From Octopus sinensis (Eukaryota), in contig NC_043011.1 of NCBI RefSeq assembly GCF_006345805.1, positions 54,696,464 to 54,760,463 of the forward strand: 64,000 nt of DNA, given 5' to 3'. Under the pieces are notes generated by a model. It worked only from the letters and a program-made list of their open reading frames with translations, had not been told where the DNA came from and searched no databases. Both the position numbers and the translations under genes were made by a program. Of the stretch, positions 7,600 to 59,839 are shown piece after piece. Every line of letters begins with the position of its first letter. The first letter of the stretch is position 1.

Positions 7600-9844
7600 G
7601 CCCAAAAATAACGAATCACTACCGAAAAAGAGAACTGAAGCAATCATTGCTGAATTTCCAATCTGATTCATCTAATAATGCTAAGCAGAAGAGAATTGCA
7701 AACGAAGTTTCACAGCTCAAGGCAGGTCTTGCAAAGTCTTTGACACCCTCATTGCATGATCTAGGATAGGTCTACTGCCAACCAGTGCAGCCAGTTCTAG
7801 CAAAGTTTGATCCAAAACTTTATGGAAATCAGAGACGTGACTTCTCGTCAAGTTGGTATACTGGTCATCCATGGTTAGAGTATTCTCTTTCAAAGAAAGT
7901 CTTGTTTTGTTTTGCTTGTCAGCACTTTAATACTTCTGCTCAAGCTGATACTTGTTTTATTAAGAATGGATATTCTAATTGGCATCATGCAAAAGAAAAA
8001 AACAAAGGTTTAAATAAGCACGCAAACTCTGCATCCCATATCCAAGCTATGGTAACATGGAAGGAACGCCAACAGCGTTTATCCACAACTACATCCGTGT
8101 CTTCAATCTTGCAAAACGATCAGTTGAGCAAAAACTGTTATTATATCAGTTCCATTGTTGATATTGTTTTCATTTTCTTTGTGCACACGAATTGCCTTTT
8201 CGAGGAAACGAAAATGAAGCTTTTCAGGATCTTTATTTGGAAGATGACACGCAGCCTTGTGGTCTTTTTATGAAATTATTCCAGTACACATCAGAGAAAG
8301 ACTCTAAGCTACTGGAATATTACAGCACGATTCCAAAAAATGCGACCTCCACCTCAGCAGCAATGCATAACGAAATCATCGAATTGTTGAAAAGACACGC
8401 TGTCAGCCTCGTGGTCGATGAAATAAAATGTTTCGATGTTCCTAATTTTACGCTGAAATGTGACAGAACGCATGATTTGAGTAATACTGAAAATCTTGCA
8501 ATTGTTATTAGGTACTTGCAAAACGGCAGGATTCTGGAAAAGTTAGTTGCCATGCCAACTACTCAACATTATGATGCTGAAACATTGGCCGACTTGATGA
8601 TTAAGGAATTAACCAACCTTTGCAGTGACCCAAAGCGTATGTTGTTACAATGCTTTGATGATGCTTCTGTGATGTCTGGCAAAATAGGTGGCGCTCAAAG
8701 AAAGATTCAGAATCGACTTGAGGAATATATACCTTATGTTCATTGTCTTAATCATCAGTTGCATCTTGTTGTGGTTAACACAATAAAGCGGATTCCGGAG
8801 TTAGCTACGTTCTTTGACACCATTAATATTCTGCATAATTTTATTAAACGGCCAAAGATAGCTAGTCTCTGGAAAGGATTGAAGTTGCCACGTCTTATGG
8901 AGCATAGGTGGTTGGGTCATTTCACTGCCATAGAAAATCACTCCAAAATTGTTGGTTTGCTAACCGAATGCACAGATTCGTCAGATTCAAAAACGTGTAT
9001 AGAGGCAACTGGAATTTTACATCAAGTTCGTTCCCCCAAGGTTTGTTTTTCTAGCCCTTGTTCTTAGCAAATTTCTGCACATAAATATAGCAGTAGACAA
9101 ACAGCTTCAGAGTCACAAATGTGATATATACCATGGCCTTGGGCTTCTTAAGATTGCCAAGAGTGAAATAACCAAACCGAGAAACTCTTTAATATTTGAT
9201 GAGATTCTGAAACAAATGAGTCAGTTTAATGTTATTGAGGAACGCATGTGTCGAAAAGTTGCGGGTCCCAACGTTTTTCAGATTATGTTGCTGAAGCCCT
9301 GGTACCATCACGACTGGATAACTTTTCATCACAAAATTTATTTCGCCATCATCGATGAAAGCTTGGGAGAGCTAGATAATAGATTTTCAGAGCAAAGCGA
9401 TAGTCTATATTCTTCCTTGGCAAGTCTACTACCAACGTCCGAGACATTTTTGGATTTTGATGCTTTAAAACCTTTGAGCAATTTAGTTAATTGTGATAAA
9501 TCTGCCTTACTTTCTGAACTTACTGTGGCAAAAGCATACATTTCCAAACAAATTATGATGACACTGCTCGATAGTTTGGGATCTTTACGTATTGCAAAGG
9601 ATGCCTTACCAAATGTTTATCTTTTGTATGGTGCAGCATTAACATTGGATCTAGCACAGCTACATGTGAATCATCATTTTTGACACTAACTCGAATTATG
9701 ACACCCTTTCGATGAAATATGAAACACCAGCGAAAACCAAACCTCGTGAAACTTGCTTCTCTTAATAAATACAAATCAAGTACAGAGAAGGACGATTTTC
9801 TTAAATTTTTTGCCTTGCGTTGCCGTAGATTGCAGTTGTATTAA
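7600..9844 (+). mobile_element. Decayed hAT-superfamily transposase (ZnF-TTF / ZMYM1-ZNF862-like type)
   Basis: Overlapping ORFs 7785-8273 (W..HPWLEYS....LFCFACQHF..NW, TTF zinc finger), 8192-9067 (LKCD, QCFDDASVMSG, YVHCLNHQLHLVV, RW) and 9216-9683. A C-terminal dimerisation motif TATCESSF follows in another frame. Frameshifts and stops are present; TIRs were not found. Confidence 0.85.
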
Positions 9845-15521: not shown

Positions 15522-16124
15522 GTGTTCAGGTCACTGCTTGGAATTGAACTCGGAATCTTGGGGTTAGTAGCCCGCACTCTTAACCACTACGCCATATGCC
15601 GTGGGTCAGGTTCAAAATTTCCCCCAAGACTCCTGAATAAGGCTGGAGAGTATATCAGCTGAAACGTTGTGTTAGCAACAAACAAGATGAAGACAAATAT
15701 CCATGAAATGTAAATAATGTAAATAATGTACATAATTCCTCATCTCTTAAATACAGAACTACATTATTATTTGTTTTATAAATTACAAAATTCTAACTGA
15801 TTAGCATTTTGATTACACCGTCAAATGTAATGCTTATTATTTCCATTGTTTTTAATTAATAATTCATTATCCCATAGCTTTAAGATTTCAATGTTGTGAT
15901 TACTTTTAGAATGATATCGTCCATGCCAGTGTCACATAAAAAGCACCCGCTACTCTCTCGGAGTGGTTGGCATCAGGAAGGGCGTCCAGCCATAGAAACC
16001 ATGCCAAACCAGATTGGAACCTGGTGCCACTCTCCAGCTTACCAGTTTCAGTCAAATTGCCCAACCCATTCCAGCATGGAAAGCAGACGCTAAATGATGA
16101 TGGTGATGGTGATGGTGATGGTGG

Positions 16125-16164
<40 letters not shown>

Positions 16165-16244
16165 AAAGATGATGATGATGATGGTGATGATGATGATGAT
16201 GATGATTATGATGGTGATGATGATGGTGGTGATGATGATGGTGG

Positions 16245-16291
<47 letters not shown>

Positions 16292-18813
16292 GTGGTGGTG
16301 ATGGTGATGATGTTGATGATGATGATGATGATAATGATTGTAGGGTAGCAAAGTTAGATCTGGCCAGTTTGAACATAAGACAGGAAAGATATTTTGACCA
16401 GATGTGGTCAGTTTACATACTGCTAAAGTGTTAAACCAGTGGTTCTCAATTTGGGGTGTCCATATGATCCCTAAATTACTACTGTGGATCCCCATCATTG
16501 TCGTTTAATGTCCGCTTTCCATGCTGGCATGGGTTGCATGGTTTGACTAAGGGCTGGCAAGCTACAAGGCTGCGCCAGGCTCCAATCCGATCTGGCAAAG
16601 TTTCTACAGCTGGATGGTCTTCCTAACGCCAACCACTCCCACTACACTCATGGAGTGTTTGGTGTTAGGAAAGGCATCCAGCTGTAAAAACTCTGCCAGA
16701 TTGGATTGGAGCCTGGCGGTGCCTTCTAGCTTGCCAGCCTTCAGTCAAACCGTCCAACCCATGCCAGTATGGAAAGCAGACATTAAACGATGTTGGGGAT
16801 CCACAGTAGTAATTTAAGGGTCCATGAAAAAATGTTACATTGGATGTATTTACAGCAAGAAACAACAAGGGTTTCTTTCTCTGACTTTTTACAGAGTTCA
16901 ACTTATTTTGGGTGTTAAACAAAATAAGAATTTTGAAAGAAGAATCTATAAAACTAGTTTTTAAAAATCAAATGGCTTTAGGGGTCCAACAGAATAGAAT
17001 AGAAATCAAAGGGGTCCATAGATAAAAAAAATTGGTTGAGAACCCCTGGGTTAAACGAAAAAAAAGAACTAACTTGAAACTTACATTTATGCTTGGTTTT
17101 ATGTAATTTCAGTGAATCTACATTTTACACATTAACAATTAGCAACGCAGGTTTTTCATTTATGTTATGGACCTGATTTCTTGAGGATTTTAAAAGATGG
17201 TAGGTAACCAAACTTGGAATTTAAATCAAGATAATGCCAATAAAAACAATGAAGCAGACATATTATAAAATTTAAAGGCAGCTTCGGGTTTCACAGTTTG
17301 TGCAAGAACCACCATGCATATAGAGAAAAAAATGCTCTCCAAATTTCTAATATTTAAACTTTCATACATACTGTTGATACCTTGGCATTAGGAAGGGCAT
17401 CCAGCCACAGAAAACCATGCCAATTCAAACTGGAGTCTGGTGCAGCATCCCACCATCCCAGCCCAGGCAAACCATTCAACCCATCGCAACATTGGACTAT
17501 GGATGTTAAATGATGATGATGATGATGATACCAGCATGGAAGGTGGATGTTAAACAATGAAGATGATGATGATGATGATGATGATGATGTGCAAGAATTC
17601 AAAGGAACGTTGTTTACGCATATGTAACATGCACAAACCTTGCAGAAGTAAGAAATGCATGTAGCAAAACTCGAAGCACTGCTGACCAGATTCTGCACAA
17701 AACCTCTTGGCACTTGGAAGATTTCAGCCACTTCCCAGATGGTCTTCTGTTTCCACACTTCAAACAGCATCAGGGTTAGATAAAATCTGTTCACAGCAAA
17801 TTCATCAACAGACTACAAGATAAACAACAGAGAAAAAGAAAAATTGTGGCAACGAGTCATACAGTCTTCAGATGCTGAAATTTTGAAAGATATTATTTAC
17901 ATTATTTACATTCGATGAATATTTGTCCTCGTCTTGTTTGCTGTTAAAACGTTTCGGCTGATATACCCTCCAGTCTTCATCAGGTGTCTTGAGGAAATTT
18001 CAAACCTGGGTTCTCATTCCTAAGGTATTTTTTGATGTTATTATTATTATTATCATTCAGGTCACTGCCTGGAATCGGATTCAGAATCTTGGGATTAGTA
18101 GCCTGCACTCTTAACCACTATGCCATGTGCCCACGTAATGTTCTCTTTCTCACACACACACTACAATGCTTACAGAAGGCTACTGAATTGTAATCTCTAT
18201 GTTGCTTGAGGGGAAGGTAAAACTTGACAAACTGCTTCTCCCTCTGTTGTTGGACTACAGTGGTGTTTGTTTAAAAGAGAGAGATTATGACTGTGATAAA
18301 ATAATGAAAGCAATATTTACTAAGCAAGTGAGCACTATTATACAAAGAAATAGACATAAAATATAATTGGGAATCAAATGTGAAAATATTATCAAGAGAC
18401 TAGCAGAAAACAGCCTGGAGGGCAGTCTTTCTGCTATTTCAATGAATAATTTTTTTACATTAGAATAAACTGTGGGTTTTACAAATAGCAAATTAAAACT
18501 TGAAATTAAAACATTGAAATGAATATCTATTAAGTAATTATTAGTGAAAATAGAGGCAAGAGAGAGTGAGAGACTTGTAAATGAATAATATTGTTTATTA
18601 AACATTAAAATCTACTCTGCAGTGAATGCAATGAATATTTAAATTTGTGAAAAACTTGTAGTCCAAATATTCAGTAAACTTCAGAAATCAAATTTACCCG
18701 GAATTTCTTGGAACATGAATTTATAAAATATTTCCAGACAGTCAAGTCTTTGATAATTGCTTTCTGTTAGTAACTATAACATACCAAATTAATAAGCATC
18801 TTTCTCCACTATA

Positions 18814-37800: not shown

Positions 37801-38018
37801 TTCTATGCTTGCAATGGGTCAGATGGAGTTTATTTGAGGCAGATTTTCTTGCAGCTGGATGCCCTTCCTGTTGCCAACCCTTGTCTGTTTCCAAGTAAGG
37901 TAAGATTTTCCCATGGCCAGACATCCTTGCAGAATATTGGAACTGAATGTAACTGCTTGAATGAAACTGTCACTTATTTACAACTAAGACAATGTCAAGA
38001 CAAGGAGACACAAACACA

Positions 38019-38053
<35 letters not shown>

Positions 38054-41000
38054 GTGTGTGTATGTGTATATGTATGTATGTATGTGTGTGTATGTGTGTA
38101 TGTATGTATACATGTATGTGTGTATGTATGTATGTATGTATGTATGAGTGTATGTGTGTATGTATGTATGTGTGTATGTGTGTATGTATGTATACATGTA
38201 TGTATGTATGTATGTATGTATGTATGTATGTGTATGTATGTATGTGTGTATGTATGTATGTATGTATGTATGTATGCATGTATGTATGCATGTATGTATG
38301 TGTACATGTATGCATGTATGTATGTATGTATGTGTGCATGCATGCATGCGTGTGTGTCTGTATTTAAAAGTTCTAGCAAAAGAATACTTGATACAGTCAT
38401 AATGTTTAAAGAAGGATTTTCTTAAAAGTTTTAATTGTTTAAAATAATTTTTTGAGCAACAGTAAAGTGCTGACACACAATACAAAAACTAATTTCCAAA
38501 AGGTTTGTGTCGTTTTGCTTTTCAAAAAACATTTTGAAATAATAATTTTCAAGAAACTCTTTCTTAAAATTATATATATACATTTTTTTATTCTTTCTTT
38601 CTAGGCGCAGGAGTGGCTGTGTGGTAAGTAGCTTGCTTACGAACCACATGGTTCCGGATTCAGTCCCACTGCATGGCACCTTGGGCAAGTGTCTTCTACT
38701 ATAGCCTCGGGCCGACCAAAGCCTTGTGAGTGGATTTGGTAGACGGAAACTGAAAGCAGCCCATCATATATATGTATATGTATGTGTGTGTGTATATGTT
38801 TGTGTGTCTGTGTTTGACTCCCTAACATCGCTTGACAACCGATGCTGGTGTGTTTACGTCCCAGTAACTTAGAGGTTCAGCAAAAAAGACTGATAGAATA
38901 AGTACTAGGCTTACAAAAAATAAGTCCTGGGGTGGATTTGCTCGACTAAAGGTGGTGCTCCAGCATGGCCACAGTCAAATGACTGAAACAAGTAAAAGAG
39001 TCAAGGAGTAATGAAGGTAATCACACTAGACACACCTGATAATGCATTTTATAGAAAACCTTTCTCACCTTTGAAGAATTTTTGATTTGTTTCTCCTCCT
39101 GATTCTTGAAATGATTCTGTGACTTCTTTTTGATTTCAAAATCATCATTTCCAAAGATTGAATCTAACATTGTTGAGATTGATGAGGAGAAAATATCCCT
39201 CTGGGAACTACGAGTTGGTGAAAAATGGTCGGCATCAACCGACTCTTTGGAAAGCTTTCTTCGGAAAGGACTGGATTCTGATACTTTTGCACCACTGGTT
39301 TTAGTTGAATCCTTTGCTGGTTTTTGAGGTGGAGACAGACTGAAAAGTTCGGTCGAATAAGTTTTGACCGAGTGAGGAAGATGCTGACCCGAAAAGAGGT
39401 CAGCGCTCTCAGGTTGAGCAATAATTTCATCTGGTGGTGTTTCATATAATCCAGGAACTGGTTTATTTCTTTGGAATTCTTCTGTTCTGTCATTACAGAA
39501 TTTTTTCTGTTGCTGGACGGCATCAGCAGAATGTGTGAGCTGAGCTGTTTGTAGAGCACTTTGCTGCCTGTCATACTGTGTAGTAATTCCAGAAATATCA
39601 AGCTCTGCTAGATCAGCATCACTGTTCTCAAATAAATCTCTCTCGTCATCACAATCACCATCGTCTATTAAAATATCCTGAAAATAAAATAAAACGTTCC
39701 AAAGAAAAGTATGTAAATATTCCTATATGTTAATTTATATTCTAGTGACTACACTATTAACCGTTTAGCATTTAAACCGGTCATACCTGCCAAAATATTC
39801 TTTTCTACTCTAGACACAAGGCCCAAAACTATGGGGGAGGGAACCAGTTAATTAGATTGACTCCAGTACACAACTGGTACTTAATTTATTGACCTCAAAA
39901 GGATGAAAGGCAAAGGTGACCTCGGTGGAATTTGAACTCAGAACGTAAAGACAGACAAAATACCACTAAGTATTTCACCCAGTGTGCTAACGTTTCTTAT
40001 TTCTTTATTGCCCACAAGGGGTTAAACATAGAGGGGACAAACAAGGACAGACAAAGGGATTAAGTCGATTATATCGACCCCAGTGCGTAACTAGTACTTA
40101 ATTTATCGACCCCGAAAGGATGAAAGGCAAAGTTGACCTCGGCGGAGTTTCGACTTGGAATGTGATGACAGAAGAAATACCGCTAAGCATTTCGTCTGGC
40201 GTGCTAACGTTTCTGCCAGCTCACTGTCTGGCCAAAGTATTCTGCCAGATGTATGTTCAAACTGGCCAGATCCAGCCTCTCACACCTACCCAACAGTGAC
40301 ATTCTAACAATAAACAGTTACATCATCAAGCATCTATTTTTCACTGACACAAGAGGCCAAGCAAAAGAAGCTTACCAAGAAGCTCATGATGACCCATTTT
40401 TTCGACAGCAAGAACAGCATCTACATCCACAGAGTTTCTACTCACCAGATGTTCAATAAAAAGTACTTTTATGAAGATTTTGAGGGAATTCAGGAAAAGA
40501 TTTCATTACAAAAGACCAGAGCATCTGAACCAGGACAATGCACCACTCCATGATTCCATCCTAGTAACCAACAACTTGACAGAAATAGGCATCAAATCTG
40601 TCCCTCACCCTCCCTCCAGTCCTAACCATGCTCCCTGTAACTTTTGGTCATTTTCCCAAGATGAGGCAGATGAAGGAGGCTGTGACACCTTTAGACACCC
40701 TTCGGTTTGGAGGACTTCCATGGGGCCTTCATGAAGTGGCCAGAGCACTACAACAAATGCAATGAAGTCATCATATCTTACTTTGAAGGAGATTAGAGTT
40801 TTGTACTTCTTTGAAATTAATAAATTAATTAATTAATTAGGCGTAGGAGTGGCTGTGTGGTAAGTAGCTTGCTTACCAACCACATGGTTCCGGGTTCAGT
40901 CCCACTGCGTGGCATCTTGGGCAAGTGTCTTCTACTATAGCCTCGGGCCAACCAAAGCCTTGTGAGTGGATTTGGTAGACGGAAACTGAAAGAAGCCTGT

Positions 41001-48736: not shown

Positions 48737-50058
48737 ATTGAGATTCAGTTGAATTAGGTACTTAAGTTGAAGCACCAAGTCAGTCCGGTACTGCACAGCC
48801 CGAAGTAAGGTGAATAAAATCGAAATAAGCAACAGGATATCAAGTAGTGATATCCTGTTGCTTATTTTGATTTTCTATAGATATATATTCTTTTATTCTT
48901 TTACTTGTTTCAGTCATTTGACTGCGTCCATGCTGGAGCACCACTTTTAGTCGAACAAATCGATCCCAGGACTTATTCTTTGCAAGCCTATTACTTATTC
49001 TATCGGTCTCTTTTGCCGAACTGCTAAGTGATGAGAATGTAAACATACCAACATTGGTTGTCAAGTGATGGTGGTGGGTACACGCACAGACACAAATAAC
49101 AAACACACACATACATATATATATATATGACAGGCTTCTTTCAGTTTCCGTCTACCAAATCCACTCACAAGGCTTTGGTCGGCCCGAGGCTATAGTAGAA
49201 GACACTTGCCCAAAGTGCCACACAGTGGGACTGAACCCAGAACCATGGGGTTGGTAAGCAACCTACTTACCACACAGCCACTCCTGTGCCTTAGTTTGAC
49301 ATATCTTGTCAAATACAGCAAATTGCCATATCAATTTTTTGTGTTGTTATATATATATATATATATATACTAATATAACAACATATATATATATATGCTC
49401 GAATATAACAACACAAAAAAACGACCCTTCATTAGTTGTTGACTGTTTTTCTATTCTCGTATGCTAGTCCTTCATAAAAGAAAGATAGAAAAGAAAATAT
49501 AAGGAAAAGGAATGAGAAAAGGTGTTTGAGGACATAATATATGTACATGTGTATATATATGTATTGAAAGATAGAGGGAAAAACTCACATGCACAAACAC
49601 ACACACGCACGCAAATATACATAAATACATGCAAAAAGCACCATCCGAGCGTGGCCGTTCGCCAGCCTCGTCTGGCACCTGTGTTGGTGGCACATAAAAA
49701 GCACCCACTACACTCACGGAGTGGTTGGCGTTAGGAAGGGCATCCAGCTGTAGAAACACCACCCGATCTGACTGGCCTGGTGCAGCCTTCGGGCTTCCCA
49801 GACCCCAGTTGAACCGTCCATGGAAAGCGGACATTAAACAATGATGATGATGATGAAATAGATAGACATGTACTTATACAGATATACATCTATGATTTTT
49901 TGCAAAGAATCTATATTAAAATATAAAATAATAAACAACTGTTTTTTCTTCATTTTTCCTTTTTTTTTTTTCATTTTGGTTGATTTTGTTCTTTCAGGAA
50001 CAAACTAAATTCTTAACTTGTTCTATCTTGGGGCCACACCACTAAACATTCCAACACA

Positions 50059-53000
50059 ATGTCGAAGAGGTCTAATAGAAAGCGGAAACTTCCACAGTGG
50101 ATGCTGTCTTCGGTCAGTTCCAAAACTGAAACTACAAGAGATTCTGATGATGATCAGCTTGATGCCGATTGTGATGTTGAGTCAGAAGATAATGACACAA
50201 AAGAGCATTCTAAGTATTGGTTTATCTTTTATTAAATGTTTTTAGTTATCTCTAACCCTGTGCCTGTCCAAAGCATTTTCATAAGTTTGTCTCAAATGTC
50301 CATACTTTTTTTCAAGCTTTAGCTTAACCATTGTTTCATACATTCTGATTAATATAAAGCTATCCTTTCTTAAGTCCCAAATTCTAAATGATGAATAATT
50401 TTCCAAAGGTGGGAGATCTCTTAGGGTTATTTGCAGAAAGTGGAGCCGCAATTGCCCAGTGGTTAGGGCAGCAGGCTCGCAGTTTCGATTCCCAGACCAG
50501 GTGTTGTGAGTGTTTATTAAGCGGAAACACCTAAAGCTCCATGAGGCTGCAACAGCGGGTAGTGGTGAACCCTGCTGTACTCTTTCACGACAACTTTCTT
50601 CTTGTTTCTGCTGTACCTGTATTTCAAGGGGCCAGCCTTGTCACACTGAATCTCCTCAAGAACTATGTTAAGGGTACACACATCTGTGGAGTGCTCAGCC
50701 ACTTGCACTGAGCAGGCTGTTCTGTTGATCGGTTCAATTGGAACTCTTATCACTGTAACCGACAGAGTGCCACGATTTGCAGAAAACCCACAAAACCATG
50801 ATCACCTTGACCACTAGGACACATGTTGGTGGCTGAAAGAAATCAGGAATGTGTATCATACATGACCTATGGACACTAGGAAAATATGTTCTGTATTTCA
50901 CATGTAATACTAAGAACAGACAAAGAGTTAAGAATTCATGTCAAACATAAAGATTCAAAGTTTTACAAAACAAATTACCATGTACATTATTTACATTTGA
51001 TGGATATTTGTCCTCATCTTGTTTGTTGTTAACACAACGTTTCGGCTGATATACCCTCCAGCCCCTTCATCAGGTGTCTTGGGGAGATTTCGAACCTGGG
51101 CATTCATTCCTAAGGTATTTTTCAATGTTATTGTTATTATTATTATTATTCATCGTTTAGCATCCGCTTTCCATGCTAGCATGGGTTGGACGATTTTGAC
51201 TGAGGGCTGGCGAACCAGATGGCTGCACCAGGCTCCAATCTTGATCTGGCAGAGTTTCTACAGCTGGATGCCCTTCCTAACACCAACCACTCCAAGAGTG
51301 TATTATTATTATTAGTATTGTTATTATTATTATTATTATTCAGGTCACTGCCTGGAATCGAACACGGAATCTTGGGATTAGTAGCCCGTGCTCTTAACCA
51401 CTACGCCATATGCCTGTGGATACCTGATGAAGGCTAGAGGGTATATCAGCCAAAACTCTGTGTTAACAACAAACAAAATGAGGACAAATATCCGTCAAAT
51501 ATAAATAATGTACATAATTGCTCATCTCTTAAATATAGAACTAAATTAGCACGTATTAGCCCATGGTTGGGAATCAAGCTTCTTAACCTCACTGCCATGC
51601 CTGCACCAAATTTTTCCAAATTGCAGTCGCCATAATTAATTAGTTACATGCTGCCTTATTGCATTATTTTTGATATAATGATTGTTCATTATTAAGAAAT
51701 GTAGTTGGTTTACCATATTTCCAACAGCCTTGACCGAGCCAACACAGTAATGTATATGATGAGTGAACAAGAGCTGCTACATGTTGCCATGAAAACACTT
51801 CATACGGTAAGACTAAAGTTGTATATAATGCTTGTCCTAATTCAGCATGAATCACTATATCCACCACTAATAGGGGTTGGACAATCCCCATATTATCTCA
51901 CCATTCATTTCACATTGGTCACACGTTTGTTCTTTCTCGAGCCATGCCTGGCTCATAAGGGCCGGTTTCCTTGGCGTATAGGTTCCCCACCTGGATGGGA
52001 CGCCGGTCCGTCACAAGTGAGCTGCAAGATGCAGGAGGAAAGAGTGAGACAAAGTTGTGGCAGAAGAGTCAGCAGAAGCTCACCATTACCTTCTGCCGGA
52101 GCCACGTGGAGCTTAGGTGTTTCGCTCATAAACACACATTTCACCCGTCTGAGATTCGAACCCGCGATCCCTCGAGCGCAAGTCCGCTGCTCTAACCACT
52201 AGGCCATGTGCCTCCACACATTGGTCACATACAGCAACTGAGAAAATCTTCCATTTCTAACCATAAATTCCATAAGCCTTCGTATATTTGACCAGCAGTG
52301 CTACATAATAGTGAAACGTGTGGAGAGATGTGTGAAGAAATGCCACTCTCAAACAGTTGAAAGAATCCGGGGTAGGGGTAGCCCCAGGAAGACATGGGAT
52401 GAGGTGGTCAAGCATGACCTTCGAACGTTGGGCTTCACAGATGATTTGTCTGTAAAATTAAGTGCTTTATGGATATGAAACCATTGGTCACTCTCTGACT
52501 GGACATAGACTTAACAGCATGTCAGTACATTACAGCTCTAGCCTTTAAAGGGTGTTTCTTTTCTGGATATATGATACACTGATGATATGTATTTTTGTTG
52601 GTCTTTTTATATGTGTGTGTGTATAAAAGCACCCATTACACATTACACTCTCAGAGTGGTTGGCATTAGGAAGGGCATCCAGCTGCTGAAAATCATGCCA
52701 AATCACACTGGAGTCTGGTGCAGTATGCCAGTATAGATAACAAACATTAAATGATGATAATGATGATGATGAGGGTGATGATGATGATAAGTATGTGTGT
52801 GTGTGTGTGTGTGTACACATGACTTTTAATTGCATATATTATCCTTAGTTCTTTCCTATTTTTGATTTGATTTTAGGAAAATGAAGATCTTTGTTCTGAT
52901 GAAAAACCCACCACAAAACCTACCAAAATATGTTTCAAAAACAAAACTCTTGTTAACTTTCAACCATCCAGTCATCGGAACCAAGTAAATTCTGTTGCTA

Positions 53001-53440
53001 TTAACGATAACAGCATCGATGCTAATGACCATGAAGACAACAGTAGAAGGGTTGACACGAGGAAAGAAATCAACGAAAGTCGTCACACGAAAATTAAATC
53101 TCATAAGAAAATTAATGATTCTGTTAAAAACAAAAAATTAAAAACCAAGACACCAAAGACTTCCAGGAAAGATATTGAACCTGTTCCTCCAGATACATTG
53201 TCTGGTCACAGCCATAAAAAACCCACAAGGGTTTCAGGTACAATATTGACTAACCGAGATGTTGAGACAGATCAGATAGCAACAGACAAAGACATTCATA
53301 TTAATAACAAACAGTGGACAGATGAAAATATTCAAAAGGATAAAAATGGACCCACTTTACCCTTCACTATATTCAGCTCCAGAGAAACAATCTCTCGTCA
53401 AAAACCCGATTTGTCAATTTTAGATGAAATATTTTTGTAA
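50059..53440 (+). CDS. CYREN: CYREN/MRI-like NHEJ adaptor (cell cycle regulator of NHEJ); 3 coding exons, 265 aa
   Basis: Exons 50059-50213 (donor AA|GTATTG), 51728-51806 (TTTCCAACAG|..ACG|GTAAGA) and 52877-53440 (TTTTAG|GAA..TAA) join in frame. An in-frame stop lies upstream of the ATG. Motifs: RKRKLPQWML (RxLPxW Ku-binding type), TVMYMMSEQELLHVAMKTL and C-terminal DLSILDEIFL*. These match human CYREN as recalled from memory (RVLPSWL; TVYCMNEAEIVDVALGIL; VLKYVREIFFS). Confidence 0.8.
51031..51078 (-). ncRNA. Second near-intact minimal hammerhead motif
   Basis: GACAC CUGAUGA AGG GGCUG GAGGGUAUAU CAGCC GAAA CGUU GUGUU; two extra nucleotides before stem II. Confidence 0.55.
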
Positions 53441-54113
53441 TAAATTTGGAAATCTGATTAAATTTGATTCTTTTCTTCTTTCCTTTTAACTGCTTTTACA
53501 TCCAGTTTTCCTTTTCCTCATTTTTTCTGGGAGTTGAATAATGAGTCCAAAAATTTAGACACCATTTTGTTTGGTGAATAAGATTGCTTAAAAATAATTA
53601 AGTTTCTTTCTTTAGAACTAGAAAATGCATTTTTGCTCTGAACAGTTATAGAATTAAAAACTAAGATGACGAAGACTCTGGTAAATATTAATCAAGAAAG
53701 ATACCCCTTAGAGTGAATAGCTCAGAAATCAGGGAGGCTGCTTAGCATTGAGGCATCACAACTCTGATACTACAGACGTGATTAGAAATGACAAAGTAAA
53801 GAATCATGAGACAAATTCTTTGAGCCAAGCCAACTGCCAAGAGACCTAGGGGTAGACCAAGAACAAGATGGTTGAATAATATCCATAATCTCAGTTAGAG
53901 CAGGGATTGCTCTTTTTACTCTTTTGCTTGTTTCAGTCATTTGACAGTGGCCATGCTGGAGCACCGCCTTTAGTCAAGCAAATCGACCCCAGGGCTTATT
54001 CTTTGTAAGCCTAGTACTTATTCTATCAGTCTCTTTTGCCGAACCGCTAAGTTACAGGGGACGTAAACACACCACCATCAGTTGTCAAGCGATGTTGGGG
54101 GGGACAAACACAG

Positions 54114-55143: not shown

Positions 55144-56391
55144 TCAGTTTAAGGGTTTCCCTCCAGCATGTATCCGTTCGTGTCTTTTTAAAAGGGTGCT
55201 TGTGATAAACGATTTCTCACAGATGTCACAGTGATACGGTTTCTCTCCAGTGTGAACCAGTTTGTGTCGGTTTAAGTCGCTGTTATTGACGAATGATTTC
55301 CCACAGACTTCGCAAGGGCAGGGTTTTTCCCCGGTGTGTCTACGTTTGTGACTTATAAGATCAGAATTCCGATTGAACGATTTGCCACACATCTCACAAA
55401 GATAGGACTTTTCTCCCGTGTGAATCTGCTTGTGGACGACCAGAGTCGAATTTTTACAGAACGAATTGCCACACACATCACAGCGATACGGCTTTTCTCC
55501 CGTATGTATTTGCGTGTGACGTTTTAAATCATGGTTTTTAAGGAAAGCTTTCCCACAGATTTCACAAGGATACGGCTTCACCCCCGTGTGTATTTTTTTG
55601 TGTGTGTTCAAGTGGCCGTTGGTGAGGAAGGCCTTGCCACACACTTCACAACAATAAGGTTTCTCACCAGAATGCATGAGTACGTGTATCGCAAGTTGTG
55701 AATTCACATAGAACGACTTCCCACACAAATCACAGTGATAAGGTTTTTCTCCAGTGTGAACCCGCTCGTGGCTTTTCAAATCACTACTATTCACAAAAGT
55801 CTTCCCGCACAGCTCACAGTGATAGGGCTGTTCTCCCGTGTGTCTACGTATGTGGATGGTAAGCTTGGAATTTTCAATAAAAGACTTTCCACATATTTCG
55901 CAATGGAACGGGTTTTCCCCTGTATGGATTCGTTTATGTCTCGTTAGATTACTGCTATCAACAAAACATTTCCCACAAACTCCACAAAGATATGGTTTCT
56001 CCCCTGTGTGACTACGTATGTGGATAACAAGAGCTGAATTATTAATAAAAGATTTTCCACAAATTTCACAGTGAAATTGTTTTTCTCCCGTATGGATTCG
56101 CTTGTGATTCGTTAAAACACTGTTATACACAAAAGACTTTCCACATATATCACAGTGGTACGGTTTCTTCTTATTGTGTATTTCTTGGTGTGTGAAAAGT
56201 TCATGTTCTGAAGAGAATGTTTTCCTACAATTCTCACACTTATATTCCGGAATTTTTCTTTCCACTGAACTTTGATTCGCAAACGTTTTAGTAAGTACAA
56301 CTTTCTCTCCGCTGCATGTCTGTGTAACTGAACCTACACTGTCGAAAACGGGTGTCTTGTTACAAGACTCCAAGTAATTCACATCCTCCAT
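55144..56391 (-). CDS. C2H2 zinc finger protein, 13 tandem fingers, single coding exon (415 aa)
   Basis: Intact ORF with 13 CxxC-x12-HxxxH units joined by TGEKP-type linkers and no recognisable KRAB/BTB/SCAN domain. Candidate 5'UTR intron 56418-56528 (G|GTAAGT donor; TTTCTCAG acceptor). Confidence 0.93.
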   Translation of the reverse strand: MEDVNYLESCNKTPVFDSVGSVTQTCSGEKVVLTKTFANQSSVERKIPEYKCENCRKTFSSEHELFTHQEIHNKKKPYHCDICGKSFVYNSVLTNHKRIHTGEKQFHCEICGKSFINNSALVIHIRSHTGEKPYLCGVCGKCFVDSSNLTRHKRIHTGENPFHCEICGKSFIENSKLTIHIRRHTGEQPYHCELCGKTFVNSSDLKSHERVHTGEKPYHCDLCGKSFYVNSQLAIHVLMHSGEKPYCCEVCGKAFLTNGHLNTHKKIHTGVKPYPCEICGKAFLKNHDLKRHTQIHTGEKPYRCDVCGNSFCKNSTLVVHKQIHTGEKSYLCEMCGKSFNRNSDLISHKRRHTGEKPCPCEVCGKSFVNNSDLNRHKLVHTGEKPYHCDICEKSFITSTLLKRHERIHAGGKPLN

Positions 56392-58636: not shown

Positions 58637-59336
58637 ATGTCACCACGCGGGAGGCGATTAAGCCCCAAAACTTTATGCACCGATATCGTTGACGATGAAA
58701 AAACTATTCGCGAGTCTTGGACATTTTGTGAACTCGTTCAACATATTTCGACAAATGATAAAGCAATTGAATGGTTGGCGAAATATAAGCTTATAAGCAA
58801 TTCTGTTACATGTCCAGCTTGTGGGAACCCGTGTACGATTATCGGCTATAAGCAAGGAATTGACGGGAAACGATGGAGATGCCCGAATCATAATTTCTCT
58901 CGATCAATTCGTAAAGGATCCGTGTTCGAGAACAGTCGTCTCTCGCTGACAACATTCACATGGCTTATGTATATGTGGTCGAGGGATTATCTACTTTTCG
59001 AAATGGCCCATGAGACGAACGTTTGTATGAAGTCGATTATTGATCTGATCCGACTGGTCCGAGAACTATTAGAACGGTTCCTGGAAGATCATCCGGCAGA
59101 ATTAGGTGATGTCCCACCCGAGATTGGAGGGTTCGATTTAGAGACAGGTGAACCCAAAATCGTTGAAATAGATGTAACTAAATTTGTTAAATCTAAACGT
59201 AATGAAAAGAAACATGCGAAAGAATTTTGGGTTTTTGGTGGAATCGAACGGGGAACTGAGAAATGCTTTCTAGTACCGATTGAGTATCAAAATAAAGAAG
59301 CTTTCGAAGCTGCGATTATCCGATGGATTTTACCAG
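58637..59336 (+). mobile_element. Merlin / IS1595 (ISXO2-like) transposase-derived coding exon, N-terminal two-thirds
   Basis: About 233 codons with no stop. Contains a zinc-ribbon CPACGNPC..RWRCP, SIRKGSVFE..RLSL, KIVEIDVTKF and WVFGGIER..CFLVPI..IIRWILPG. A donor CCAG|GTATGG follows at 59336, after which similarity ends. Confidence 0.8.
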
Positions 59337-59839
59337 GTATGGTTTATAAAATCCGGTTTCACTTTTATTTGTATTGTCTTCAATCTGCTTTTAAATTTGG
59401 CTTCGCAGGGACCATTCTTTACCCCTCCCCTTTAATTATGCCTGTCGTTCTTTAGTTTTAACGCCAATGGTCATCTCTGGCGGGTCGGTACTAAGTACCA
59501 ACGCACCTGTGATCACCCTTCTAAGATACAAACTTCTTGTTTTAAAGTTATCTAAATTCTTCCATCAAAATCTCTTGATTTATGTTCCATACACCAGCTT
59601 AATAATGTTAAGTTTTTTGCTAAATATGATATTTTCGAAATTATTTAAAGCAAAGGCAATTTATTTCCACAGAAATAACAATAGGGTGTTGTGGCATAAG
59701 TACAGATTAGTGCCACAACTTTTCGTGTAACTTTCTGAAAAGGGCAATTTTTTAAATGAAACTCTGTAGAAGTATGCTTGGGAGGGTATAAATTACAATT
59801 GTTCACACGAAACTATATATTTTATGTATATATGAATGA

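Follow-up and report, generated by a model that had tools for sequence, protein, structure and literature searches.

CYREN/MRI, also named C7orf49, is a disordered adaptor of non-homologous end joining (NHEJ) whose role is disputed; it has been regarded as an NHEJ inhibitor in S/G2, as a stimulator, or as an adaptor to ERCC6L2. To our knowledge, it has been studied only in mammals. Here we describe LOC115219763, a gene of Octopus sinensis that lies on the forward strand at 50059–53440 of a 64,000-nucleotide stretch of contig NC_043011.1 (the window, whose coordinates are used throughout). The window belongs to chromosome record CM016873.1. We consider it quite probable that LOC115219763 is a real gene and that its product is a divergent homologue, most likely an orthologue, of vertebrate CYREN/MRI.

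The closest described systems are built around short motifs that contact Ku. The APLF-type Ku-binding motif (A-KBM) binds the hydrophobic pocket of the Ku80 von Willebrand A (vWA) domain in a Trp-dependent manner, with R-x-x-P-x-W as the minimal core, and both a Ku-binding motif (KBM) and an XLF-like motif (XLM) have been described in MRI (PMC4831024). Across species, the residue that directly follows the Trp is predominantly Met, and Met at this position (M17) increases the affinity for Ku80 vWA more than 30-fold relative to the Leu of the human protein (bioRxiv 10.64898/2026.07.22.740027). Residues 49–81 of human MRI, consisting of a strand (53–57) and a helix (58–81), are responsible for multimerisation and are needed for the stimulation of NHEJ (bioRxiv 10.64898/2026.07.22.740027). 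T52, V53, and Y54 pair with the HEBO domain of ERCC6L2 in an intermolecular beta-sheet, and MRI bridges Ku and ERCC6L2 (bioRxiv 10.1101/2025.11.28.691009). The HEBO domain itself is kept in human, sea urchin, and Neurospora (PMC4886357). Grundy et al. described the conservation of CYREN/MRI among vertebrates only (PMC4831024), and in the searchable literature, the coverage of which is incomplete, we found no report of an invertebrate CYREN/MRI or of any CYREN/MRI outside vertebrates.

Exon layout of LOC115219763 and comparison with mammalian CYREN

LOC115219763 consists of three exons, all with GT..AG borders, that splice to 798 nucleotides (nt) in frame and encode a low-complexity protein of 265 amino acids (aa) rich in K, D, S, T, and N. 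A first-pass annotation, made from the sequence alone, had stated that the list of open reading frames (ORFs) breaks this gene into separate pieces, which is the case in the mechanically produced list. The two junctions that it proposed, 50213/51728 and 51806/52877, are bordered by GT..AG, and the protein resulting from the in-frame splice is 100% identical over its full length to the RefSeq entry "uncharacterized protein LOC115219763 [Octopus sinensis]". The name of this entry is also of the kind that the annotation had predicted. The elements of the gene are as follows.

50059–50213, forward strand: coding exon 1, 155 nt, aa 1–51 and the first two nucleotides of codon 52; ATG...AA/gt, start and donor taken from the sequence; the Ku-binding motif at the N-terminus is followed by an acidic linker
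50068–50109, forward strand: putative A-KBM, aa 4–17, RSNRKRKLPQWMLS; core R9-x-x-P12-x-W14, then Met15
50214–51727, forward strand: intron 1, 1514 nt, GT..AG, phase 2, codon N52 split as AA/C; contains transposon-derived repeats
51728–51806, forward strand: coding exon 2, 79 nt, aa 53–78, LDRANTVMYMMSEQELLHVAMKTLHT; ag/C...ACG/gt
51807–52876, forward strand: intron 2, 1070 nt, GT..AG, phase 0
52877–53440, forward strand: coding exon 3, 564 nt including the stop codon, aa 79–265; ag/GAA...TAA, frame open throughout; a long tail, disordered and enriched in K, N, D, S, and T, ends in the conserved C-terminus
53408–53437, forward strand: candidate C-terminal XLF-like motif, aa 256–265, DLSILDEIFL; Phe264 penultimate, R252 and K254 upstream; stop codon at 53438–53440
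53439–53444, forward strand: AATAAA hexamer, a possible poly(A) signal read from the sequence, overlapping the stop codon

Three short motifs were the basis on which the first-pass annotation proposed a CYREN/MRI-like protein, and each was found where it had been placed: RKRKLPQWML at 50077–50106 corresponds to aa 7–16, the central sequence TVMYMMSEQELLHVAMKTL fills the 79-nt exon 2, and DLSILDEIFL is followed directly by the stop codon.

The agreement of gene structure between octopus and mammals carries the most weight. We threaded the gibbon and hedgehog CYREN proteins through their genomic loci. In both mammals, the coding exons are 137, 76, and 261–270 nt long; intron 1 is in phase 2 and splits R46 (AG/A) before L47, and intron 2 is in phase 0 and follows E71. 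In the octopus gene, with exons of 155, 79, and 564 nt, intron 1 is in phase 2 and splits N52 before L53, and intron 2 is in phase 0 and follows T78. Profile alignments pair octopus L53 with mammalian L47 and octopus T78 with mammalian E71; the number of coding exons, the positions of the introns, and their phases are therefore equal, and the intron comparison that the first-pass annotation had proposed gave exact agreement with mammalian CYREN mapped on genomic DNA. The central motif occupies a mini-exon of its own in octopus and mammals alike, and the two differ in length by a single codon, that of M60. A fourth coding exon of mammals, ahead of the C-terminal motif and taken from predicted isoforms, was rejected: genomic mapping of the canonical gene gave three coding exons. 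We favour common descent mainly because the intron positions and phases match, a coincidence that convergence of short motifs does not predict.

Profile comparison pointed in the same direction. A sequence that we took to be human CYREN served as a search probe only and was replaced by retrieved real sequences. The probe search returned 295 proteins, and among the 120 of these that were listed all were mammalian CYREN with PF15325. In mammalian CYREN, the near-invariant elements are NKKRVLPSWMTA near the N-terminus, TVYCMNEAE[IML]VDVALGILIE in the middle of the protein, and D.LKYVREIFFS at the end. A full-length hidden Markov model (HMM) was built from 102 canonical mammalian CYRENs, and hmmsearch with this model gave the octopus protein a score of 16.8 bits (E=4e-7 at Z=1, for one pre-specified target), with the Ku motif and the central motif collinear in octopus and mammals. 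None of the 40,000 shuffled sequences (20,000 global and 20,000 block-wise) reached this score; the best of them had 13.5 bits, and the octopus sequence in reverse had -1.7 bits. When the HMM was run against the 2,132 six-frame ORFs of the window (at least 20 aa), the ORF containing exon 1 ranked first (11.9 bits) and that containing exon 2 second (8.3 bits), the third best reaching only 3.8 bits. Local hhalign of the Octopus against the mammalian alignments gave a probability of 81–82% (P=1.1-1.2e-5) over octopus residues 4–78 and human residues 6–71. Global hhalign of octopus against mammals gave nothing; as the tails have no relationship to each other, the local alignment alone can be interpreted. 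Taken over the full length, the profile similarity to CYREN appears moderate, not overwhelming.

The individual motifs were evaluated by BLOSUM62 scoring against the mammalian consensus, restricted by position, with 20,000 or 1,500 shuffles. These tests replaced segment HMMs built from mammals only, which were over-specific for the 13–14-column Ku and C-terminal motifs. In the first 25 aa, where octopus RSNRKRKLPQWMLS (aa 4–17) aligns to mammalian NKKRVLPSWMTA (aa 8–19), the real score of the Ku motif was attained by none of 20,000 shuffles. For the central motif, sought anywhere in the protein without gaps, one of 1,500 shuffles attained the real score, and the segment HMM of the central element gave 7.6 bits (0/20,000 shuffles). 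Octopus exon 2 aligns to mammalian LPATRTVYCMNEAEIVDVALGILIE, itself a 76-nt exon with the same phases, and octopus NTVMYMMSEQELLHVAMKTLHT aligns to the human 49–81 element TVYCMNEAEIVDVALGILIE with one 1-residue indel, suggesting that exon 2 is the counterpart of the strand-plus-helix element in the centre of MRI. The octopus C-terminus resembles mammalian DVLKYVREIFFS, with L..[LV].EIF shared and a Phe adjoining the C-terminus. This match is weak, and the over-specific segment HMM trained on mammals did not detect the C-terminal motif. Judging from these alignments and shuffles, we consider the similarities of the Ku motif and the central motif solid and that of the C-terminus only suggestive.

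Structure prediction was consistent with the probable disorder noted at first. The AlphaFold2 model of the octopus protein is mostly disordered, with a mean predicted local distance difference test score (pLDDT) of 42.8, and only residues 61–80 average more than 50. It contains helices at 65–81, the part with the best confidence, and at 258–264, a short terminal helix; the exon-3 tail has a pLDDT below 50 almost throughout. The model of gibbon CYREN, obtained with a 42-sequence alignment, has helices at 58–79 and 139–156 and is otherwise disordered, with the confidence raised at the Ku motif. The central helix begins at an aligned Glu (E65 in octopus and E58 in gibbon). The predicted layout thus appears to be the same in the two proteins, which are disordered apart from one helix that follows the central strand and another at the terminus; we treat this likeness as supporting evidence only, because the octopus model has low confidence. 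The disorder of both models is too great for a comparison of folds to be informative.

The octopus protein and CYREN/MRI have the following in common. The APLF-type Ku motif is N-terminal and lies at an equal distance from the start; in the octopus it comprises R9, L11, P12, and W14, a preceding basic patch, and Met15, which is the Met-after-Trp variant of most mammals. The pattern TV(x)Y-M-[SN]-E-x-E-[LIM]-[LV]-x-V-A-[LM]-x-x-L is carried on a small exon of its own (79 vs 76 nt), and reads in the octopus as T58-V59-M60-Y61 followed by the conserved M..E.E...VA...L. Three coding exons are separated by a phase-2 and a phase-0 intron at aligned positions, and both proteins are largely disordered, with a central and a terminal predicted helix and a hydrophobic ...EIF[FL] C-terminus. 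They differ in that the linker after the Ku motif is acidic in octopus, whereas it is basic and Ala-rich in mammals; in that the tail is rich in K, N, and D in octopus and in S, E, and P in mammals; and in that the octopus protein ends in ...DEIFL, with no internal K/R, whereas the mammalian one ends in ...REIFFS. The octopus protein also carries the extra M60 in the strand and scores below Pfam detection, and its gene has other genomic neighbours.

Of the other Ku-binding proteins, APLF shares with the octopus protein a basic patch followed by L-P-x-W-M, including the Met after the Trp. The motif of APLF, however, is internal, between an FHA domain and PBZ zinc fingers, whereas the octopus protein has neither according to Pfam. 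The C-terminal motif is comparable to the XLM (or X-KBM) of XLF, PAXX, WRN, and MRI in its position at the extreme C-terminus, its hydrophobicity, its penultimate Phe, and the basic residues upstream (R252 and K254 in octopus). In contrast to these, the octopus basic patch is weak and acidic residues lie between it and the Phe, and the similarity is only marginally above chance.

The full-length mammalian profile, the hhalign result, the intron positions and phases, and the predicted layout all support the CYREN/MRI reading of the first-pass annotation, and we classify the octopus protein as a new, very divergent member of this known family.

Conservation within Octopus and alternative explanations

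The orthologous protein of O. bimaculoides has 263 aa and is 83% identical to that of O. sinensis. Its locus contains three matching exons (155, 79, and 558 nt) with splice-site sequences identical to those of O. sinensis, and the introns, which differ by repeat insertions, are 87–97% identical where alignable. Between the two species, the synonymous divergence (dS) is 0.13, and the ratio of nonsynonymous to synonymous divergence (dN/dS) is 0.50 overall; it is 0.20 in the motif-bearing regions (aa 1–17, 52–83, and 226–265) and 0.60 elsewhere, the counts being small. The last 40 aa differ at one residue, with a dN/dS of 0.125. LOC115219763 is conserved within Octopus and is under purifying selection. 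The pattern of dN/dS, as far as the small counts allow, resembles that expected of a disordered protein with functional short motifs. The first-pass annotation had named conservation of its three motifs in other molluscs as a test; they are invariant within Octopus, the one genus that our comparison covers. The O. vulgaris model has 203 aa, starts at the Met equivalent to M60, and is devoid of the Ku-motif exon; it is probably truncated.

Protein searches found relatives of the gene only within this genus. When 5.8 billion proteins were searched by word index, the octopus protein matched three, all from Octopus. In the PDB, a sequence search with the whole protein gave no match, and the matches to its first 30 aa were all designed leucine-rich-repeat and knot proteins of no relevance; the PDB search has a limit of 20 residues, and the Ku-motif peptides in the PDB are shorter than that. 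We also constructed a 74-column mini-profile from the octopus motifs, synthetic variants at the variable positions of the Ku motif, and X-masked mammalian rows. Its database search gave four candidates and no matches, and was uninformative rather than evidence of absence, the octopus proteins themselves also being missed; with a closely similar trial profile, the octopus protein scored 93.8 bits locally. By ordinary search criteria, the gene would rank as an orphan confined to Octopus.

Several results weigh against membership in the CYREN/MRI family. Exhaustive phmmer comparison with 1.84 billion representative proteins yielded the O. bimaculoides orthologue only, and neither this nor the word-indexed search contained intermediate sequences joining octopus and mammals. 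The score of 16.8 bits is borderline on a proteome-wide scale, with about 0.01 matches expected in 30,000 proteins. The C-terminal motif, sought in the last 15 aa, was equalled by 592 of 20,000 shuffles (p ~0.03), and the K/R residues that lie within the mammalian motif are absent from it. The TV and the Y that contact HEBO in human MRI are separated in octopus by one extra residue, M60, which could change the register of the strand. The octopus protein has 265 aa, and its mammalian counterparts have about 157. No assembled transcript that encodes exactly this protein is on record. There is no synteny with mammalian CYREN, which has TMEM140 as a neighbour; around the octopus gene lie genes for a HELQ-like helicase, a C2H2 zinc-finger protein, and a DDE transposase-like protein. 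Between lineages as distant as octopus and mammals, synteny would be expected to be lost.

Pfam is a further point on the same side. No family was found at E<=10 for the whole protein, its N-terminal 89 aa, or a tail-trimmed construct, and the gathering score of the MRI family (PF15325, 27 bits) was not reached. Of the profile check that the first-pass annotation had suggested, the Pfam part thus failed, whereas the full-length HMM of 102 CYRENs and hhalign gave the matches described above. The PF15325 model (100 positions) matches gibbon CYREN only at residues 56–157 and is mostly mammal-specific low-complexity sequence. It covers neither the Ku-binding motif nor the TVY strand, which are the two elements of the family best kept between octopus and mammals, and for this reason we take the Pfam miss as weak evidence against membership.

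The alternative that survives best is convergence, in which a disordered protein specific to Octopus or to cephalopods gained an APLF-type Ku motif independently and the matches of the central motif and the introns are coincidental. Such a protein might still bind Ku without being descended from a CYREN/MRI gene. The confinement to Octopus in the 5.8-billion and 1.84-billion protein searches would follow from it, as would the absence of a Pfam match, the weak C-terminal match, the missing synteny, and the modest overall score, and more than 600 human proteins contain the core R-x-x-P-x-W (PMC4831024), short linear motifs being easy to gain. However, the 26-residue central element is significant independently of the Ku motif in both the shuffles and the segment HMM, the motifs are collinear, and both terminal motifs lie at the corresponding ends of the protein. 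Furthermore, both introns coincide in position and phase around a middle exon of 76 vs 79 nt, which convergence of motifs leaves unexplained. We therefore regard independent origin as improbable, although it deserves more weight than the other alternatives.

It is far less probable that the gene model is an annotation artefact, with a locus that is non-coding or spliced otherwise and a 265-aa protein that is not made. The missing transcript record, the start of the O. vulgaris model at M60, and the low complexity of the sequence would agree with such an artefact. Yet the reading frame, the three exons, and the four splice sites are kept in O. bimaculoides at a dS of 0.13 and a dN/dS of 0.5 (0.2 in the motif regions), independent annotations agree (that of O. 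bimaculoides in full and that of O. vulgaris for the exon 2–3 junction), and the exon structure equals that of mammalian CYREN. An artefact is unlikely because the frame and splice sites are conserved and the exon structure is common to octopus and mammalian CYREN, and the exons between 50059 and 53440 most likely form a real three-exon protein-coding gene.

Membership in another family with a Ku motif (APLF, WRN, XLF, or PAXX) has the smallest chance of all: RKRKLPQWML is as close to the APLF and WRN motifs (WRN RKRRLPVWF, PMC4831024) as to that of mammalian MRI, but the octopus protein has no FHA, PBZ, helicase/exonuclease, or XRCC4-like head domain (Pfam, none at E<=10), is almost wholly disordered in the AlphaFold2 model, carries its motif at residues 4–17 as MRI does and not internally or C-terminally as in those families, and has a central motif and an exon structure that are specific to CYREN. 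XLF and PAXX, of the XRCC4 superfamily, were rejected on the lack of a head domain and coiled coil in Pfam, the disordered model, and the N-terminal position of the Ku motif, and APLF on the lack of an FHA domain and PBZ zinc fingers.

Repeats and neighbouring genes

An AG acceptor with a good polypyrimidine tract is present at 49996–49997, 61 nt 5' of the ATG of LOC115219763, and suggests an unannotated 5' untranslated exon further upstream. Intron 1, which is 1514 nt long in O. sinensis and 810 nt in O. bimaculoides, contains 84-nt inverted repeats (50980–51063 and 51432–51515) that are 92% complementary with 368 nt between them and have the look of a miniature inverted-repeat transposable element. 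Copies of a dispersed repeat resembling a short interspersed nuclear element (SINE) lie in opposite orientations in intron 1 (51223–51302) and intron 2 (52644–52723), and a similar sequence is present 5' of the gene at ~49714–49834. ARAGORN found no intact tRNA in the SINE-like copies. The other features of the window are listed below.

7785–9683, forward strand: three ORFs in succession (162, 291, and 155 aa) that, judged by eye, resemble a decayed transposase of the hAT/ZMYM type with a zinc finger at its N-terminus
~13100–42022, reverse strand: HELQ-like helicase gene, 1,241 aa, start codon at ~42022; DEAD, ResIII, Helicase_C, HTH_61, and POLQ_helical domains
15967–16498: long low-complexity tract with Asp/His-rich translations, giving spurious long ORFs on both strands
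37834–38485: (TG/CA)-type microsatellite arrays, giving spurious long ORFs on both strands
55144–56391, reverse strand: single-exon ORF of 415 aa with tandem C2H2 zinc fingers, annotated in both O. sinensis and O. bimaculoides
58637–59455 and beyond, forward strand: annotated product of 328 aa with PF12762 (DDE_Tnp_IS1595), transposase-derived; its position is kept in O. bimaculoides

The HELQ-like gene is located head-to-head with the CYREN-like gene, 8 kb upstream, and the arrangement is the same in O. bimaculoides, with a distance of 4.8 kb. The zinc-finger gene is tail-to-tail with the CYREN-like gene.

Proposed mechanism and ancestral function

By analogy with the mammalian proteins, a mechanism can be proposed for the octopus CYREN-like protein. 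RKRKLPQWM, within residues 4–17, would fold against the hydrophobic vWA pocket of Ku80; W14 would be the residue that matters most, and M15 would make this the high-affinity variant. The exon-2 element, with a strand at about T58–M62 and a helix from E65, may serve in self-association, in beta-sheet formation with HEBO of the translocase ERCC6L2, or in both, and the flexible adaptor would thereby connect ERCC6L2 with Ku at DNA ends. A second, weaker contact of XLF-like type may come from the hydrophobic C-terminus, ...LDEIFL. The central tail, which is about 110 residues longer than that of mammals and has no mammalian counterpart, is probably just a flexible tether. A HEBO ligand in invertebrates seems plausible, given that human, sea urchin, and Neurospora all have a conserved HEBO domain.

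A mollusc homologue would reveal which parts of CYREN/MRI have been kept over a period that we estimate at roughly 600 million years: the motif that binds Ku80, with Met following the Trp, and the strand and helix of the central element. These are the parts that recent preprints have tied to Ku binding, multimerisation, and binding to the HEBO domain of ERCC6L2. Because the kept parts are those with these functions in mammals, they point to Ku–ERCC6L2 bridging or multimerisation as the core of the ancestral function. Ancestral bridging would also fit the conservation of HEBO far beyond vertebrates.

The similarities between the octopus and mammalian genes suggest that CYREN/MRI predates vertebrates. 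That Ku-adaptor control of NHEJ is ancient, as the first-pass annotation had put forward, is what we infer from one genus and mammals. We lean towards the view that CYREN/MRI is of ancient bilaterian origin rather than a novelty of vertebrates, and that it served originally as an adaptor connecting Ku80, contacted by the N-terminal motif, with HEBO of ERCC6L2, contacted by the strand and helix of exon 2. If this is true, orthologues would be sitting as "uncharacterized" orphans in most invertebrate genomes, and the signature by which to search for them would be a Ku-motif exon, a phase-2 intron, an exon of about 76–79 nt, a phase-0 intron, and a tail exon. The combination of short motifs with intron phase and position also provides a practical recipe for discovering fast-evolving disordered adaptors that are missed by sequence search.

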